Shown: piece after piece, positions 8,896 to 64,000 of the stretch | Position numbering within the stretch: position 1 is the first letter of the stretch | Layout of the letters: each line of letters starts with the position of its first letter | Assembly (NCBI RefSeq): GCF_963676685.1 | Contig: NC_092349.1 | Span: 33,604,001-33,668,000, forward strand | Length of the DNA stretch: 64,000 nucleotides | Direction of reading: 5' to 3' | Source of the DNA: Mytilus edulis | Taxonomy: Eukaryota | Notes under the pieces: model-generated | What the model saw: only the letters and a program-made list of their open reading frames with translations | Told to the model about the DNA's origin: nothing | The model's database searches: none | Position numbers and translations under genes: made by a program

Positions 8896-9594
8896 TAAAT
8901 AATACATCTAATTTTATTTAGTTTTTTAAATTTAATTACGTTAAATAAAAGGATACGAAAAGATATATTAATGTAACTTCTTCAAAGTTCAAGTTGATCA
9001 ATTATTGATTTAAGTGAATAAATCAAGTTTATTTTCTCGAGGAATAAATTGCATAGTATACAAATCCTGGTTCTTATATAAATAGTGATATTTTTTCATC
9101 GGCGAAACAGATAGATACATGTTCTTTTGTTGTGTTGGAAGAATCGTAAAGTTTTATTTTTCCATATTGGACTTCAAATTGTGTATTGAATTAAAACATG
9201 AACGCGGACTTCGACGAGAACACCTTGAATTGAAATTTTGCAAACGTTTCGACCAATGAAATTAATTTTACTATGTAACGGGAACTTCAACGAGAGCACC
9301 TAGATAAAATATTTTATTCACACGGCAATTAGTTTTAACTTAGAAATTTCCGCTAAAATATAGTAAGTAAAATTATATGTTACACAATGCAGAATTGTTT
9401 CTTTTCCGTTTTAGTTTTTTAACAATGTTAATGTTCATTTCAATTTGGTAAGTAGACTTATATTAAATGGCCCTAACGTAAATATATGTTTTTTTTTTAA
9501 ATCAAAAGAAGACGTGAGAGAATGCCGACTTATAGCCATTCTAGGTCCTTAAACTTAAATCAACCTACCCCTCGTTATCGCATACTAAAATGTA

Positions 9595-9696
9595 TCTCGC
9601 TACATTGAAGACCTGTTGGTGACCTTCTGCTGTTGTTTTTTATTTGGTCGGGTTGTTGTCTCTTTGACACATTCCCCATTTCCATTCTCAATTTTA
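9595..9696 (+). repeat. 5' partial pseudo-LTR of the Naiad element
   Basis: Matches 13591-13692 (tctcgctacattgaagacc...ccattctcaatttta). Confidence 0.92.
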
Positions 9697-10051
9697 TTTT
9701 TTACAGAGTTTGTCTTTAGTGCCGTGTGGAGGCAGTAGAGTGCCTCCCCGTGCTTCAGGTTTATGCTCTTATAATATACTAGATTATGGAGTGTGTGTCC
9801 GAGCGAGAACTGCTTTAGTTCATTACTTTAGGAATATTTATCAAAAAGCAGTATTTCAATATTCAGCCCCATTCAACTATTTAGTCAGCCATCAGTCCTA
9901 CCCTGATATACACTATCTTTTTCGGGTAATTTATACTGATAGCGTTTGACATTTTCAGCTAACAAATTTATCAATTTTACATAACTTAAATTATTGTATG
10001 CTGGTTCATATTCTTTGCTCCTTTATTATGTAATTCACTAACAAAACAATT

Positions 10052-13000
10052 ATGAAGCTTAGAAATGGAAAAATACTAAATACTAAACTTGTTCAAAGGG
10101 TATCTACACGTCTCAATCTTCAAAATCGGTTATCTAAAAATACTACCATCGCTAACATTTTTAACAATAAAAATCGTGGCTACCCTTCTATCGATAAGTG
10201 TCATGCCAAAAAATGACTTACATGTCCCCGTCTTTCCACCAACAATACGGTAAGGTCCACGTTTAATGGTCGCACATTTTCTTTAAATTTTGAAACTGAT
10301 ATAACTTGAAAAACAAACAGTATTATTTATTTACTCACATGAAACAAACCGGGGTGTGGTATTCAGTACGTAGGAGAAACTGGACGATATTTATCTAAAC
10401 GCACTCAAGAACATCTGTATCGTTTTAAAAGACCAAATAAATTCAAAAGTATCATTTACCAACACCTTAAGAAGCACAACCATCCTTTTAAATATTTAGC
10501 AGTTCAACCTTTAGAAGTAGTAAATAAGCAGCCTGGTGAATCGCATTCAAAGTTTGTACGATCACGGAAAATAATTGAATTAAATTGGATTAAAAAATTA
10601 CAGACAGTTTACCCTCTCGGTCTAAATGATAATATCATGGGAATTGGTAATATATCTAGAACCAATACCGTTAACATTTTGGATATAGTTTCTAAAACTG
10701 TTCGTAAAAACCGTTCTCACGGTCGTAGAACAAATCGCAATCAAAGAAAATTTCGGGCCAATCATACCAATATTTCGAACCTAATTTCTATTTCAAAAAA
10801 CAACGGCAGACATTATCTGTTAACAAAACTCTGTTCGTTACCGGTTAATAAGTTAAATAAAATTTTGGAGGATTGCAACACAATTTCATATAGCAGTCCT
10901 AAGTATGAAATTGTTCAAATTATTATGGCATATTGTTATTCTAAATTATTTCCCAAAATTGATCGCCCTGAAGATCATAAAAAGCATTTTATTAAAATTA
11001 AGTATGTCAATAAAGGCTTTGATTTTGTAAATATTGCCGGTATATTTAACGATCATTCTGTTAAAGAACAAATTTCTGGATATTTTGACAATACTGAGCT
11101 ACCTCTTATTTGTTATATTTACAAGAAATCTACCCGGAAATTTGTGTTTAATTATAGTCAATTGTGTAAAGATGTTAATATCAGTGAAAATACACCTACT
11201 TCATGTAATTGCAGTAATTCCGAATATATTTATGGACCCATTTCCCATGTTATAACAGGAGATCTTAACATCGTTCAAGACCGAGAGTTAAAATCATTCC
11301 TCAGTAAAGGACCTAAATATCGTCCCCCGTCAATTATTAATTGGAATGAGTGTCGTAATATCATCCACGACTCACTCCATACTTACTGTATAAAATGGAT
11401 AAAACGGGAAAAAGCTGACAAAAAATCTTTGGACTCTTTTTTTAATTCAGTAATGAAGATAGTTGATATACGTATTCAACATTTTAAAGAACATTTTACT
11501 ATTAACAATAACCAAAATAAACCTATTTCTCGTATCAAACATAAACTAAAAGAATTAGCCAAGGAATTTGTTTTTGTCCCGGCCGATAAAGCTGCTAATA
11601 ACATTATTATTGTTTGACGTAAATTTTACATTGAGGTTCTGAAAAAGGAAATCACCAATTCACCAACATTCCAACTGACTCCATTTTCAGAAAACGAAAT
11701 CTGTAACAAACATAAACTTTTAGCCACCGCTTTAAAAGCAGAGCCAAATACAATGAAAGTCCCAACAATGTATTGGCTTCCGAAGCTACACAAAACCCCT
11801 TACAAATATAGATTTATTTCGTCTTCAAGCCATTGTTCAACTACTAAATTGTCTATTCTTCTTACCAGCACACTTGGTACAATTAAAAACCTTATAATAA
11901 ATTGTTCAAATAAGGCCTTCGAAAATAGTGGAATAAATTACTTTTGGAGTGTCAAGAACTCGTTGGAAGTTTCTTGATAAATTGCATGCTTATATTGGTG
12001 ATTTTGAATCTATTCAAAGTTTTGATTTTTCTACCCTGTATACCACATTGCCTCACATTCTCATTAAGAAAAAAATCACACACCTAATTAAATGGGCATT
12101 CAAAAAATCAGAATGTGAATATATATGTTCAAACTCTTTTAGGTCATTTTTTAGTAGCAATAAACAAAAAAAATATGTTAATTGGACATGCTTTGATACT
12201 ATATATGCCCTTGAATTTTTACTAGATAACATTTTTGTTCGCTTTGGGGATTCCGTATATCGTCAGATTATCGGAATTCCAATGGGGACTAACTGTGCAC
12301 CACTTATTGCGGACCTCTTTTTGTATTGTTATGAGTTACAATTTATGACAAAAATAAGCAAAGATCCATCAAAACAACATCTGATAAACAAATTTAATAA
12401 TACTTTTAGATATTTGGATGATATTTTGGCTCTCAATAATGACGACTTCAGTATGTATATTAATGAAATTTATCCTGCTGAACTTACTTTAAATAAAGCT
12501 AATATTAACAATGACCACTGCCCTTTCCTCGATCTTGATATCTATATCACTAACGGAAAGCTGAATACTAAAATTTATGATAAAAGGGATGATTTTTCAT
12601 TTCCTATCGTTAATTACCCGTTTTTAGATGGTGACGTTCCGTTGTCACCATCTTACGGTGTTTATATATCTCAACTTGTACGATTCGCTCGTGTATGTAA
12701 CAATGTTTTAGATTTTAACGAGAGAAATTTATGTATTACTGAAAAATTATTACACCAGGGTTTTCGATATCACAAACTAGTCAAAACATTTACTAAATTT
12801 TATCATCGGTATAAAGACATCATTCGTAAATATAGCTCAACATGCAGACTTCTTATACGTTCAGGTATTTCACATCCAATTTTTTATGGAAATATTCTTT
12901 ATAAAGCACAAAGGTGTCAGTATTCACCTCAGAAACTTAAAAAAACCTTTGAATAGACTTATTAAGAAGGGATATAATTACGATACTGTTGTCAAGTCAT

Positions 13001-13062
13001 TAAAGATTGCATATTTTGGCGTTAATATTGAGTCACTGATAAGGTCTTTGCGTCGGAACTAA
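10052..13062 (+). CDS. Naiad EN-RT polyprotein, predicted selenoprotein (~1002 aa, 4 Sec), with two +1 frameshifts in this copy
   Basis: ATG at 10052 (MKLRNGK) is in frame with ORFs 10637 and 11753. The only in-frame stops before ~11970 are TGA at 10214, 10307, 10340 and 11615, all at Cys positions. Extra T at ~11970 and extra A at ~12940. Corrected end is ...PLNRLIKKGYNYDTVVKSLKIAYFGVNIESLIRSLRRN* (TAA 13060-13062). Confidence 0.85.
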
Positions 13063-13111
13063 ACACATTTATTCTAAAAACAGTTGTTGGCATGACACGG
13101 GTTATGTTCTT

Positions 13112-13180
13112 CTCATATATGTTATGATGGTATGATACTAAACCCCTAACGGGAAGGATTGTGCCTGATGTACATATGAT
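13112..13180 (+). promoter_or_regulatory. SECIS element (type II form) in the Naiad 3' UTR
   Basis: ATGAT (13124-28), GGTATGATACT, AAA (13140-42), CCCC taac GGG a, AGGATTGTGCC, TGAT (13166-69). Gives the AUGA/GA core, an 11-bp helix II with one mismatch, unpaired apical As and a mini-helix, flanked by a catat/atatg lower helix. Confidence 0.85.
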
Positions 13181-13590
13181 GAAATCATAATCTTTCAGTC
13201 AGATTAATTGAAGTCTGGAGCTGGCATGTCAGTTAACTGCTAGTAGTCTGTTGTTATTTATGTATTATTGTCATTTTGTTTATTTTCTTTGGTTACATCT
13301 TCTGACATCAGACTCGGACTTCTCTTGAACTGAATTTTAATGTACGTATTGTTATGCGTTTACTTTTCTACATTGGTTAGAGGTATAGGGGGAGGGTTGA
13401 GATCTCACAAACATGTTTAACCCCGCCGCATTTTTGCGCCTGTCCCAAGTCAGGAGCCTCTGGCCTTTGTTAGTCTTGTATTATTTTAATTTTAGTGTAC
13501 AATTTGGAAATTAGTATGGCGTTCATTATCACTGAACTAGTATATATTTGTTTAGGGGCCAGCTGAAGGACGCCTCCGGGTGCGGGAATT

Positions 13591-13692
13591 TCTCGCTACA
13601 TTGAAGACCTGTTGGTGACCTTCTGCTGTTGTTTTTTATTTGGTCGGGTTGTTGTCTCTTTGACACATTCCCCATTTCCATTCTCAATTTTA
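13591..13692 (+). repeat. 3' terminal pseudo-LTR segment of the Naiad element
   Basis: Direct repeat of 9595-9696; solo relatives at 21061-21335 and 43500-43666. Confidence 0.9.
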
Positions 13693-14849
13693 CTCATATA
13701 TACAGAATACATGTTCATTTATTGGAAGTACGTCACGGTGCATGACAGCACAATAATCCCTTTACAGAACCGTAAGCACAATATTTTTGTTTGATATCTG
13801 GTTCTCTTCCACAATTAACGCCTGTTTTGTGCCAGTGACCGGTATTACAATTTAACACAGTTTTAAAAGTTCATTGAGCTGCTACTTCATTTAGAATTTT
13901 GAGCAAGACTAACTGTTTATCATATTCAACAAACGTCAACATTATTTTCATCAATTTTATTATTCAACAAAACATTGTTTTTCATTACAAGCTATTCCAT
14001 AAAATAATATACAGCTAGGGAATGAATATTTGTTGCTTACCGGAAATATAAGATACATTTATTTAAATTATGTACACAATAAATAATTTCTGTGTGGTTT
14101 TCCGTGTCTATATTTAATTTACGAGTACAATATAGTAAAACAGAAAAAAGAGAAACGGTAAATATACAGGAATACATGAAGTTTCGTAAATAGTTGCAAA
14201 GGATCACACGTTACTTACATGCCACGAGTTTTCATAGCACTTGGCAATTTTTGAAACGCATATATATGTGCGATAAAGATCTAGTGCATTTGTGCAAATT
14301 AAGATTATGTTATACATCTAGCTATTTTATTTTCAACAGATTCACAAGTTTTGCATTTTTAAACCGCGCGTGCATATATATTTTAATGTTCTTATTTAAA
14401 ACCATTATATATGTACATGTCCTGTGTATTATTCATTCGTTTGTTAAATTGTGAAGCATGTGACTTTACTAAGACTATACGCATTTAATTAACTGAAGTC
14501 GATAATGTTTGAAACAAAAGACGATAGATACATCGAGGTCGTTTTGCTTGAGTGATTTACCTGTAAAAAGCCCGGGTCTCGTCCATGTTTAAAACAAATT
14601 AATGTCTGTTTGAAATAGTTTAACGGGGGCGTGGCCTTTTAGTTTGACGCATCTAACCACCATCTTGATTTCAATTGGTTGACCGCAGAGAAATCCATTT
14701 GACTGGCGTTAAAATGAATTGAAATGAATTGAAATGGATAAAATATAATATCTAATTTTTGTCAATCTCTATCAAATGACGATTAATCTCATTTAAATAG
14801 CGTTAACACGTTTTTGTCCGTTCAAGCTAAATTCGGATTACTAGTGAAT

Positions 14850-20530: not shown

Positions 20531-21060
20531 TGATAAAACTACTAAAACAAAATTGTCCACTCAGAATTAAATATATGCAAAGAATGATAATCAAGGTATG
20601 AAGACTCAAAGTATTCTGTTTTCTGAAATATATCTTTAGACAAATGTTTACGCCAACGCGCAGCCGGATTGTATTGCGTACACTTAGATTTTTAATTAAT
20701 TTAAAGCGAGACAAAGGGTTAATACCTGGGCTTTCAGAAGAAAATATTCATTGAATTATACAGTGTTCAAATTATGTTGTAAAATATGTTAATTTAATAT
20801 ATAGAAGATATTACTCATTCGAGTACTAGTAATCCATGGAATTTCATACAAAATTAAAAAAAAATCAATTTAGTATCAGGAATAAAGGAATATTAAACAA
20901 AACATGTACTAGTAATATCAATTTTAATAAATCAAAAGTTGTAATTGTATAATGGTATGGAGCCATATATAAATTGATATTGTATTGTAAAACTATACTT
21001 ATCATTCTATTTTGGTAGAGTTCTCGGTAGATGATATTTCCTAGAACTATTGTAATTTTT

Positions 21061-21335
21061 TTGCGCCTGTCCCAAGTCAGGAGCCTCTGGCCTTTGTTAG
21101 TCTTGTATTATTTTTAATTTTAGTTTCTTGTGTACAATTTGGAGTTTAGTATGGCGTTCATTATCACTGAACTAGTATATATAATTGTTTAGGGGCCAGT
21201 TGAAGGACGCCTCCGGCGTGCTGAAATTTCTCGCTGCATTGGAGACCTGTTGGTGAGTGACCTTCTGCTGTTGTCTTCTCTATGGTCGGGTTGTTGTCTC
21301 TTTGACACATACCTCATTTCCGTTATCAATTTTAA
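21061..21335 (+). repeat. Solo 3' end (pseudo-LTR) of the same Naiad family as 9595-13692
   Basis: Aligns by eye to 13434-13692 (gcgcctgtcccaagtcaggagcctctggcc...ggggccag.tgaaggacgcctccgg...gttgttgtctctttgacaca). Confidence 0.88.
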
Positions 21336-41380: not shown

Positions 41381-43499
41381 TTAACATGATATCCATGAAA
41401 TATTTCCTATAGAAATCATTGGTCTTATGAAATGGATCTCAAACAGACTTGCTTGATTTAAGATCTAAACATGAATGAAAAAGTGTTTGGTTGTTTAAAA
41501 ACAAAATAATAAGTATTTGAAACAAGATTGGAACAAATTGTCTGTACCAAACGAAAGTCCCCCCTTGTTAGCCACAAGATGAGTGGTGAGTTCAAAAGAG
41601 ACACATGGTCACATTTTAAAAGTGCCTCAAGTCACCCATTTTAGTAAAGCTTTGACTAGAAGTTTTTTGCACTTAGTAAATACAGCTGTTTCTTAAACCC
41701 CGTCTCTTTTGGGTAGATCTGTAAAATTCATAGATAATTTTATTTGTTGACATTATGGTTCCCAGATATGAACTCTATGTTTTATAGAGACATGATATCA
41801 GACATAACTTGGGACTGTTACCAGCATAACAATATACTATATTGCTGTGAAAATGAGTTCTGAAGTAGGAAAAAAGTAAAGGAAAATTCAAAACAGAAAA
41901 TCCAGTAACAAACCACAAAATTTAAAGCTCATACGCATCAAACATGCAAAACGGGTTACTTAGTGCAACCTACACTGACATTTCGTCAAATAGAAAACTC
42001 TCTAAAACACGTTTTTCTCACAACAGTACTTGTTTATCAGAAATATAGCCTTATAGAAATCACTGTATAAACTCTCTATATAAGTTTTCTGTTAAATAAT
42101 TTTAAAATAATAAAATGATAGCATGTACAAGTTAATCATCTGTTTTATGACAATATGGGGTAGACATTTTTCTCAGTTTTTTGCACCTAGGTCCTCGCAT
42201 TTACTAAATTATATCTCTGTAATTTTTGAAGCCCCTTATAACTTGCTCTTTGGTATGAGCGTACGCTCTGTGTTGAAAACCGCACCTTGACCTATAATGT
42301 TTTAGTTTTATAATTTCACAATCGTAGAAATGGAAGCCATTTTAGGGATGACGCGCTGCCAATTTTGCTCTTGAAAACCGATAAATTTATCCGCATAACA
42401 CCATTGCGATCCTTATATGTCAGTTGTATTTTAAAAGACAAATGTATCTACTAGCTAATGAGCATTAGTTAATGATCTTGTCTGCATTGATTCAACTTAG
42501 AATTATTGTCTAATCGGTTGTCATGTGGAATTTTTGAAAATTCATAAATATTTAAAAGAATTCTAATTAAATATTTCGTGGAAGAGCAGACTAGATTTCT
42601 TTAGTGGTTGAACACTATAAACCTTAGTGTTCACCCAAAAAACATTATGAATTTTCAAATATATCTTTTTTCATCATCCAACTTGAAAGACTGTCGTCAA
42701 GTACTTTTATTAAAAAAAATAGCTATTCGAACACTCTGTTTTTATGATTCATTAGATAGGTATTTCATTTGACCCATATAGTTCATCTTTTAGTACCGTG
42801 ATTTTTTAGGTTATAAAGTCAACCTGTAGCTTTGATATATAAAAATGATAGAATCTGAAGCGAGATCATGTATTAAATATTCTTGCTTTGTACGTTTTCA
42901 AGACAAAATATTCAACTGAAACACGCCCTGACGTAAAATGTGCACTTGATTTTCTCTTTTCGATACAATTGTTACCCATTTTTTAGAATTTTTTCTTGAG
43001 TCACATAATGGAAGGGCAGACACGAAAATAACGAGACAACGCTCAACTATAGCAAAATAACGTAGAAGCTAAATAAAATATGTGTCATACCAACTAAAAC
43101 AATGAAACAAAGACACAATGCATAGTCAGCTATGAAATGTCTCGAAATGAGAAATGTAAGACAATTCAAACAAGAAAAATGAGGGCTGATTTGTGTTCAA
43201 ATCAATAAACGGAAAAAGATGTGATATACATCGACAAATAACAACCATTAAATGAAGACAGACATCCAACGCGAGAAATTCTAAAATCAATGAAATGAAA
43301 CATTTATTCCTATACATGTTTCCTCTGACAACTTCACAACAATGCATTGGAAAAAAACACCTTTTTATTTCATGATTGTAGCACAAAGTAGTTTTAATTT
43401 GTCATTTTCTTCACTTTTTAAAAAATGACTCGGTCAACATTTTTACATCAAAATAAACTTATAAGAATAAACATTCAACCTTAAAACATTTATTCATTA

Positions 43500-43666
43500 T
43501 CACTTAACTAGTATATACATTTGTTTAAGGGCCAGCTGAAGGACGCCTTCGGGTGCGAGAATTTCTCGATGCATTGGAGACCTGTTGGTGACCTTCTGCT
43601 GTTGTCTGTTCTATGGTCGGGTTGTTGTCTCTTTGACACATTCCCAATTTTCATTCTCAATTTTAT
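43500..43666 (+). repeat. Solo Naiad 3' pseudo-LTR fragment in the C1qDC intron
   Basis: Aligns to 13530-13692. Confidence 0.85.
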
Positions 43667-61900: not shown

Positions 61901-62059
61901 CGAAGGCCACCAATGTCATTCTTTATCACAGCTAGAAAATTCAGCACTATCAAATCGGTCTTCAGCTGGCTTTGAACAAAAATCTGAACTATATATAGCT
62001 TGTACAGTGAAAATAAACGTCATAATAAATTCCAAAACATATAATTGAACTAAAATTTC

Positions 62060-62130
62060 AAATGCCTTACAAGACCAGAGGCTCCTGAATTGGAACAGGC
62101 GCAAAAAAGCTGCTGGGGTTAACATATATT
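62060..62130 (-). repeat. Short inverted Naiad 3' UTR fragment
   Basis: Reverse complement gttaaccccagcagcttttttgcgcctgttccaattcaggagcctctgg matches 13416-13463. Confidence 0.7.
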
Positions 62131-62329
62131 TGGGATCTGAACCTTTTAACATTTACCTGTAGTAGCTATTTGAGATTAAACAAACACACAACAATACTCA
62201 CAGTAAAAATAACTTTAGATTAAATCCGAGTCTGAGGTCAGAAAAGATAATAATAATGATATTATAAACAAACCTTAAAAAGGTAAATATGCTAGCTATA
62301 CTTACTGGAGGTTTGAAGAGATAATTGAA

Positions 62330-63778
62330 GCTGTTTATTTTTTCCTTGGTAATATTTATATACGTTTCGGCATCAAAGTTTATCGACAGGTTGTAGGTAT
62401 CCCTATGGGCACTTATTGCGCCGCTTTAATAGCAGACTTGTTTTTTAATGTTACGAATCCCAGTTTATGACTTAACTCAGTAAAGACCCGTAGAAATTGC
62501 ATTTAATTGATAAATTCAACAACACTTACCGTTTTCTTGATTATATTTTTTCGTTAAATAATCAAGAATTTTCTCAATATACTGCTGAAATTTACCCCAA
62601 TGAAACTCCATACAAAAAAATACGACAAAAGGGACGATTTTTCGTTTCCTATTGTTAATTTTCAAATTTAAGATAGTTACGTTCGCTTTGCCCGTGCCTG
62701 TTGTGACGTTCATGATTTTAACGAACGTAATCTATGTATTACTGGTAAATTATCAAACCAGGAATATCGTTGCCATAAATTACTTAAAACATTTACTTAA
62801 TTTTTCTATAGATATAAAGATTTGGTTTTGAAGTTTAGTTGTACCTGTAGAAATCTTATTTCAAACGGGATAGCACATCCTCATTTTTACGGAAATGTTG
62901 TTAACCGTGTCCGAAAATTTAGAAATGATCTTTGTAAACTTATCGCTCCTTTTGATAAACTTATTCTAAAAAGGTTACCAATTCAACACTGTAATAAGAT
63001 CATTGAATATTGTTTTTATTGGTATAAATATTGATTTAGTTATCAGTAAATTAAAATCAAACTAAATATTACTAGTATGTTATATACATATACACATTCA
63101 TGGATCTACAATCTATCTGTATATACCTGTATCTTGGCATTGCACAAGGTCATGTTTTTCTTTGACTGTTTATGACGTCTTAAACTTAATCCATTGTATG
63201 TTGGATGTGTACGGATTAATAATTGTGTCTTAGATGCGTGATTTTTTTGTAAGTTGTGAGTGACTTTGAACCAGCTGTCAGTTAACTGCGAGTACTCTCA
63301 TATATGTTCCTAGTGTCCTTTTGTTGTTGGGATGTACAAGTACCAGGCCACGTACACTTGTATTTTTGTCAATCTGATAAGTTAAGCCTTTTTCAAATGA
63401 TTTTTATAGATAGTTCTTATGTTGAACTGTTATAGCACTGTCCAAGGTTAGGGGAGGGTTGGGATCCCGCTGACGTGTTTTACCCCGCCCCATTATGCCT
63501 GTCCTAGGTAAGGAGCCTGTAATTGAATGGATGTCGTTTTTTTATATGTTACATATTTGTTTTTCGTTCAATTGTTTTTATATGAATAAGGCCGTTAGTT
63601 TTCTCGTTTGAATTGTTTTACATTGTCATTTCGGGGCCTTTTATAGCTGACTATGCGGTATGGGCTTTGCTCATTGTTGAAGGCCGTACGGTGACCTATT
63701 GTTATTAATTGCTGTGTCATTTTGGTGTCTTTTTGAGAGTTGCCTCATTGGCAATCATACCACATCTTTTTTATACTT
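62330..63778 (+). mobile_element. 5'-truncated, decayed Naiad element (RT C-terminal half plus 3' UTR), a different family from 9595-13692
   Basis: VYRQVVGIPMGTYCAALIADLF, KYDKRDDF, DFNERNLCITGKL, GIAHPHFYGN and a C-terminus (...NTVIRSLNIVFIGINIDLVISKLKSN*) collinear with the intact copy; 3' UTR motifs are also collinear. Confidence 0.88.
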
Positions 63779-64000
63779 ATCAGCCGGGACAAATGGAAAT
63801 TCCTTGGCGAGTTCTTTTGGCTAATGTTTGATCCGAAAAATAGGGCTAATATGTTCTTTGTAATGAGTAATATGTTCTTTAAAATGTTGTATACGTAATT
63901 CGACTATGATTATAACAGCATTGAAAAAAGAATTATGGTATTTCTTATCAGCTTTTTCTCATTTTATACGTTTCGAGCATTAAGTCGTGGATAATGTTAC

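Follow-up and report, generated by a model that had tools for sequence, protein, structure and literature searches.

Naiads are Penelope-like retrotransposons that carry a GIY-YIG endonuclease at the N terminus, the motifs CX2-5CxxC and CCHH, a linker with a CxC motif, a DKA motif, and pseudo-long terminal repeats (pseudo-LTRs) but no hammerhead ribozyme (Craig et al. 2021, PMC8557442). Four Naiad families, two from clams and two from spiders, encode selenoproteins and possess three or four UGA codons together with a selenocysteine insertion sequence (SECIS) (PMC8557442). In all four published families, selenocysteine (Sec) occupies the position of the cysteine that comes before the GIY-YIG domain and of the cysteine eight residues after DKA. 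Sec is additionally found at the first cysteine of the CCHH motif in the clam families and at the first or second cysteine of CX2-5CxxC in the spider families, for which an independent origin was inferred (PMC8557442). Bivalves are also described as decoding very many UGA codons processively in Selenoprotein P (Baclaocos et al. 2019, as summarized in PMC8557442). Here, we analyzed a 64,000-nucleotide stretch of the Mytilus edulis genome (contig NC_092349.1, positions 33,604,001–33,668,000; hereafter the window), which contains an element of this type at positions 9697–13692. This element is very probably a dead full-length copy of an abundant and recently active Naiad whose intact copies encode a selenoprotein by means of four UGA codons and a SECIS. 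A preliminary description of the window, which correctly referred to the Sec-containing Naiads of clams and spiders, had proposed that the family is read through with Sec. Fixed TGA codons, their alignment to cysteines, open sister copies, selection, and a covarying SECIS all support this proposal at the level of sequence.

Translation from the ATG at position 10052 extends over 641 codons, with interruptions confined to codons 55, 86, 97, and 522. Each of these is a TGA (10214, 10307, 10340, and 11615), and neither TAA nor TAG occurs within the frame. The two alternative frames of the open reading frame (ORF) contain 38 and 93 TAA/TAG codons at a GC content of 31.6%, so that the open frame is far from a chance occurrence. 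The ∼640-codon frame with four TGAs and no TAA or TAG in the preliminary description is thus reproduced at the same positions, and the residue contexts given there for U55, U86, U97, and U522 match the translation exactly. At position 11975, the frame of the window copy comes to a non-natural end; the coding sequence carries on in frame 3 (11949–12956), which holds the reverse transcriptase part, and then in frame 2 (12886–13062), which provides the last 58 codons up to the natural stop codon TAA at 13060–13062. Because two private 1-nucleotide insertions at 11970 and 12942 break the 1002-codon ORF, the window copy is a dead full-length copy, a pseudogene that is unable to make the protein. 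The preliminary description expected the family to be mis-annotated as a pseudogene; the window copy truly is one.

Comparison of 30 genomic copies (96–99% identity) showed TGA at codons 55, 86, 97, and 522 in 29, 30, 29, and 30 copies, respectively. The preliminary description had allowed for TGAs private to the window copy, with TGT or TGC in its sisters; this is not the pattern observed. In 12 of the 29 sister copies, a frame of 1008 codons is uninterrupted except at these very four TGAs, with no TAA or TAG. When the 424 residues lying between U97 and U522 were searched against all six frames of the genome, 84 of the 99 top-scoring matches (≥93% identity) were open for exactly 424 codons, indicating that they are bounded at the same places as the segment of the window. 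About 20 copies of a 93% subfamily share one score and one identity value in this search, which suggests near-identical copies and a very recent amplification. Matches to the family are spread over contigs C1 to C14 of the 1.37-Gb genome, and judging from these sequences, the family appears to be both abundant and recently active.

The four UGA codons coincide with conserved cysteines. HMMER retrieved 2675 relatives from a set of 1.84 billion representative proteins, and the 50 relatives with at least 800 residues were aligned. As the preliminary description had anticipated for Penelope-like proteins, the residue at each of the four positions is cysteine in every homologue that covers the respective column (Table 1). 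Three of the positions fall into zinc-finger-like motifs, C50-x4-U55-x2-C58 followed by U86 and U97 with subsequent histidines; the columns of these motifs are cysteine in 33–43 homologues, and three ligand positions are UGA in the window family. Seven of the closest database proteins (37–66% identical) stop exactly before U522, whereas more distant relatives read through this position with cysteine.

The same picture emerged from a scan of metagenome contigs, which yielded 80 loci that were each read in frame. Loci that are 92–99% identical to the window family carry the identical set of four TGAs, families with 40–63% protein identity have TGA at some of the positions 55, 86, 97, and 522, and still more distant families have TGT or TGC at all of these positions. 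Intact metagenome relatives contain no TAA or TAG in the aligned range, and only two TGAs lie outside of cysteine columns. An extra TGA at the column of codon 385, the second cysteine of the linker CxC motif, is found in a number of loci (L034–L037, L040–L043, L048, L049, L051, and L053). The corresponding codon of the window family (∼11204–11206) encodes cysteine, and this Sec site is not listed in the text of PMC8557442.

Downstream of the ORF, the hairpin that the preliminary description had placed ∼50 nucleotides past the true stop was recovered as a match to the Rfam model SECIS_1 at 13114–13178 on the plus strand (30.9 bits, E = 0.0036 for 5.5 kb searched). The signature elements UAUGAU, AAA, and CUGAU are located at their canonical places, and the hairpin is near-invariant among the 30 copies. 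In a blind Rfam run on the relatives, a SECIS was called just 3′ of the ORF in seven of 16 TGA-bearing loci, whereas none was called in 17 all-cysteine loci (one-sided Fisher p ∼0.003, the seven loci representing about five families that are not fully independent). For the families with ∼40% identity, the model match already sets in within the TAG stop codon, one base before its end. A consensus fold of six SECIS elements from five families revealed compensatory changes in 12 of 18 base pairs, with AUGA, AAA, and GA being invariant. The covariance model built from these six elements gave 19 matches with E < 1e-4, all of them on the plus strand, 3′ of the ORF, and within the TGA-bearing clade. 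The SECIS on which the preliminary description had made its reading depend is thus called, covaries, and is confined to TGA-bearing relatives. When the transposon-type SECIS model was applied to the host genome, all 150 scored candidates reached at least 67 bits, and they comprised 71- and 73-nucleotide forms, indicating more than one Sec-coding Naiad family in this genome. At least 150 transposon-borne SECIS copies are therefore present, a number that represents a lower bound.

The SECIS data bear directly on the possibility that the UGAs are read through by a route other than Sec insertion, either by near-cognate decoding as cysteine, tryptophan, or arginine or by programmed read-through, and that the hairpin serves another purpose. 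This would be compatible with Sec being deduced from sequence alone and with a SECIS score that lies below the curated Rfam cut-off. However, the hairpin displays the full SECIS signature as well as covariation, and it occurs only alongside in-frame TGAs. Moreover, the TGAs are confined to cysteine columns, as in the classic exchange of Sec and cysteine, and the host genome contains five tRNA-Sec genes (77–80 bits, Rfam cut-off 47). We therefore regard read-through by a non-Sec route as improbable.

Selection was assessed by comparing L031 (window family, 99% identical) with L032, a member of a 94%-identical subfamily, which resulted in a synonymous divergence (dS) of 0.275, a nonsynonymous divergence (dN) of 0.028, and a dN/dS ratio of 0.10. 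The ratio amounts to 0.04 for codons 1–54, 0 for codons 56–96, 0.10 for codons 98–521, and 0.11 for codons 523–1002. Every segment downstream of a TGA is under purifying selection, a pattern that would be difficult to account for if the ribosome did not get past the TGAs. These values speak against a non-autonomous or decaying lineage whose TGAs would be nonsense mutations passed on by a dead master copy, with Cys-type Naiads of the same genome spreading the copies in trans. Under such a scenario, the TGAs would be common to all copies by descent, so that their fixation alone is no proof of function, and other Naiad families do occur in the genome and in the window. Yet the scenario is already largely refuted by the selection data, with dN/dS of 0.10 downstream of the TGAs, and it leaves unaccounted for the 12 of 29 copies that are otherwise open over 1008 codons, the retention of the same TGA positions in families that are only 40–63% identical in protein, and the co-occurrence of SECIS and TGAs. 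In addition, the chance that all four single-base TGAs at random eligible codons would fall on cysteine codons is only ∼0.004. On the basis of the selection data and the SECIS association, we rejected both chance TGAs and a dead master copy, and we consider the decaying-lineage explanation very unlikely. Just as little speaks for the UGAs being true stops that delimit short N-terminal peptides, with the downstream parts translated separately by re-initiation: gene callers do predict separate ORFs on public contigs that end exactly at U522, but such stops would cut the GIY-YIG domain mid-way, separating the CCHH cysteines from the GIY motif, and leave inter-stop segments of 31 and 10 codons without start codons of their own, whereas the Cys-type homologues are single polypeptides.

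With Sec as the decoded residue, the expression of intact copies can be envisaged as follows. The intact ORF would give rise to a 1002-residue protein that starts with a zinc-finger-like region and the GIY-YIG endonuclease, continues through a linker bearing CxC, GPKY, and DKA, and ends in the reverse transcriptase; in this ORF, four UGA codons stand in for four otherwise invariant cysteines. The SECIS in the 3′ untranslated region (UTR), 51 nucleotides past the UAA, most likely recruits SBP2, eEFSec, and tRNA-Sec of the host, so that the ribosome could insert Sec at all four UGAs and complete the full-length protein. This protein would then copy the RNA back into the genome, generating the partial-tandem (pseudo-LTR) insertions. 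From these sequence features, we infer both Sec as the residue at the UGAs and activity of the protein.

Four of the five tRNA-Sec genes of the host (each 79.6 bits) lie within ∼0.56 Mb (G000:C7:74815896–75374462), and the fifth is located at G000:C1:49149863–49149948. To our knowledge, five genes exceed the number present in most animal genomes. A tandem array is found at G000:C10:14401393–14442259 and on contig C945, and each of its ∼895-bp units contains a tRNA-like match to the tRNA-Sec model (45.9 bits, just below the cut-off); the arrayed unit probably represents an ordinary long-arm tRNA gene.

The element is present in DNA runs under four organism labels and in six RNA-library runs. 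In raw RNA-seq reads of two runs, the whole ORF is covered ∼5–80-fold and the 3′ tail several hundred-fold. Contigs from RNA libraries span U55–U97 and U522 with the TGAs unchanged. At position 11970, the RNA reads are one base short throughout (46 of 46 in run X22 and 71 of 71 in run X23), and at position 12942 most RNA reads are without the extra A. Over 13100–13692, the read depth rises from tens to several hundred-fold in both orientations, which is consistent with many 5′-truncated copies embedded in other transcripts.

Several points weigh against a Sec-encoding Naiad. Over the ORF, RNA reads occur in both orientations at similar depth and may thus stem from read-through transcription or DNA carry-over instead of a sense mRNA of the element itself. 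The SECIS_1 score of 30.9 bits remains below the curated Rfam cut-off of 35, and four Sec-type loci with available 3′ sequence, including L035, L042, and L053, matched the SECIS model only weakly. A Pfam search with the stop-free pieces of the element gave no hit above threshold (RVT_1, E = 0.034). Four UGAs served by a single SECIS require processive recoding, which is uncommon outside of Selenoprotein P. Finally, it is solely the SECIS that would single out Sec over another residue at these codons.

The assignment of the element to the Naiads is based on its architecture and its boundaries. The permuted order of domains, with the GIY-YIG endonuclease at the N terminus and the reverse transcriptase at the C terminus of one ORF, is visible from the motifs in the translation. 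In full-length homologues with 33–37% identity, Pfam places GIY-YIG at residues ∼96–223 (above the cut-off for P0008 as well as P0027) and RVT_1 at residues ∼650–850. A phmmer search of Protein Data Bank chains with the reverse transcriptase piece returned only chance-level matches. The identity of both domains is predicted from motifs and homologues. The linker of the translation features SCNCS (residues 383–387), KGPKYRPP, and PADKAANN, of which K-G-P-K and D-K-A are invariant across alignment A1. The exact repeat of the 102-nucleotide tail and the ends of the genomic copies at 9697 and 13692 define a full-length unit of 3996 bp (9697–13692) with an upstream pseudo-LTR. Such a partial-tandem arrangement is typical of Penelope-like elements. 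Other genomic copies have partial 3′ tails of ∼50 to 1400 nucleotides upstream and sometimes inverted partners. No hammerhead ribozyme family was among the Rfam matches up to E = 10 in 9000–14500. By all Naiad features that were tested, the element is a Naiad-type Penelope-like retrotransposon as far as its sequence tells.

Table 1. Positions of the Naiad element and its parts in the window
Feature	Position	Strand	Observation
Upstream partial copy (pseudo-LTR), last 102 nucleotides of the 3′ tail of the element	9595..9696	+	100% identical to 13591–13692
5′ untranslated part	9697..10051	+	Copies align from 9697 or are 5′-truncated at varying points
Single ORF, GIY-YIG endonuclease, linker (CxC, GPKY, DKA), and reverse transcriptase	10052..13062	+	1002 codons in intact sisters; two frameshifts in the window copy
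UGA codon 55, second cysteine of C-x4-C-x2-C	10214..10216	+	TGA in 29/30 copies; cysteine in 36/36 homologues covering the column
UGA codon 86, first cysteine of CCHH	10307..10309	+	TGA in 30/30 copies; cysteine in 42/42 homologues
UGA codon 97, cysteine just before GIY-YIG	10340..10342	+	TGA in 29/30 copies; cysteine in 43/43 homologues
UGA codon 522, cysteine eight residues after DKA	11615..11617	+	TGA in 30/30 copies; cysteine in 50/50 homologues
Private 1-nucleotide insertion (T), frameshift	11970..11970	+	In 0/29 other copies
Private 1-nucleotide insertion (A, within an A run), second frameshift	12942..12942	+	In 0/29 other copies
3′ UTR and 3′ tail, including the SECIS	13063..13692	+	Copies end at 13692; RNA depth peaks here
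SECIS with AUGA core, 10-bp helix II, AAA, mini-stem, and UGAU	13114..13178	+	Rfam SECIS_1; 51 nucleotides after TAA

Within the 5′ UTR, a stretch of 45–49 nucleotides (9884–9928 in the window) is missing in 22 of 30 copies and separates two subgroups of the family. Elsewhere in the window, 3′-tail fragments of related elements are found at 21058–21334 and 43493–43665, which are 89–91% identical to 13431–13692. Another broken Naiad-like element lies near the end of the window (61991–63967), the frame of which loses sense right after the PADK motif.

A maximum-likelihood tree was built from the 613 C-terminal columns. All TGA-bearing loci fall into one clade of this tree (SH-aLRT, an approximate likelihood ratio branch support, of 99), which also includes three 5′-truncated loci with cysteine at position 522. 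At this position, at least three changes are needed on the tree. Locus L069, from the sister lineage of the window family, possesses TGT (cysteine) eight residues after DKA on a contig that is without the N-terminal part, and has kept the SECIS (L069:1909–1981, 37.5 bits). This suggests a site-wise reversion from Sec to cysteine while other Sec sites remain. Tentatively, the Sec-coding Naiads may constitute a single old and species-rich clade, with >20 lineages on marine metagenome contigs and several families in this genome, in which five putative metal-binding cysteines (55, 86, 97, 522, and 385) switch repeatedly between Sec and cysteine.

Selenoprotein-coding transposons were first reported only in 2021, with four families, and the window family adds another bivalve genome in which such elements are numerous and appear to have been active recently. 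Annotation pipelines that treat UGA as a stop will mis-call such copies as pseudogenes. The ongoing exchange of Sec and cysteine at defined ligand positions to which the comparative data point would provide a natural series that could show the advantage of Sec over cysteine in an enzyme, and the at least 150 transposon-borne SECIS copies make the donation of SECIS elements from transposons to host genes testable. Should the enzyme indeed require Sec at four places, transposition would be expected to vary with selenium status. Were the Sec-coding Naiads a single clade with repeated site switching, production of the transposition enzyme would depend on the selenium supply and the Sec-decoding capacity of the host, and hundreds to thousands of SECIS elements that could convert host genes into selenoproteins would lie ready in the genome.

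The preliminary description had suggested that the lineage or family may be undescribed. The class itself was published in 2021, whereas our literature search found no report of Sec-coding Naiads in this host, nor any since 2021. What the window family contributes is a further host lineage and a novel set of sites, the principle itself being already known. Relative to the text of the 2021 paper, the combination of four sites that includes the second cysteine of the CX4CxxC finger seems new, as does a single large clade with site-by-site turnover of Sec and cysteine; a fifth Sec site that recurs in the CxC motif across related families and the many SECIS copies that transposons carry within one genome likewise go beyond that text.

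The closest described elements are the clam families Naiad_Scon (Sinonovacula constricta) and Naiad_Mmer (Mercenaria mercenaria), which are of the same element type and architecture, possess a SECIS within the 3′ UTR, and likewise reside in bivalves (PMC8557442). Three of the four UGA sites of the window family are found in these clam Naiads, namely the first cysteine of CCHH, the cysteine preceding GIY-YIG, and the cysteine eight residues after DKA. In contrast to the clam families, and as compared by description, the window family possesses an additional UGA at the second cysteine of CX2-5CxxC, which is published only for a spider family. The SECIS is positioned 51 nucleotides past the stop codon, whereas the published distances are 1–21 nucleotides; the relatives with ∼40% identity are near the published spacing. 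Furthermore, the published SECIS elements are of type I (PMC8557442), whereas the SECIS of the window family features an extra mini-stem and is type II-like.

The spider families Naiad_Sdum and Naiad_Smim (Stegodyphus) also possess UGA codons in CX2-5CxxC, before GIY-YIG, and after DKA, as well as a SECIS past the stop codon (PMC8557442). In Naiad_Sdum, the UGA is located at the second cysteine of CX2-5CxxC, as in the window family. According to the text of PMC8557442, the spider families differ in that they have no UGA at the first cysteine of CCHH. The Cys-type Naiads, such as Penelope-2_CGi of oysters and the mussel Naiads (PMC8557442), resemble the window family in the ∼1000-residue ORF, the GIY-YIG, CxC, DKA, and reverse transcriptase parts, the pseudo-LTRs, the lack of a hammerhead, the body of 3.4–4.4 kb, and very high copy numbers in bivalves. 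They differ by having cysteine codons at all of these sites, and none of the 17 all-cysteine loci carries a SECIS. In addition, the CX2-5CxxC finger of the published mussel Naiads contains a 5-residue insert that is missing in the window family (C-x4-U-x2-C). Selenoprotein P likewise combines several UGAs in one ORF with a SECIS in the 3′ UTR, but is a host gene that is unrelated in sequence and function. Whereas Sec serves selenium transport in Selenoprotein P, in the window family it would take the place of cysteines that putatively bind metal in a transposon enzyme.

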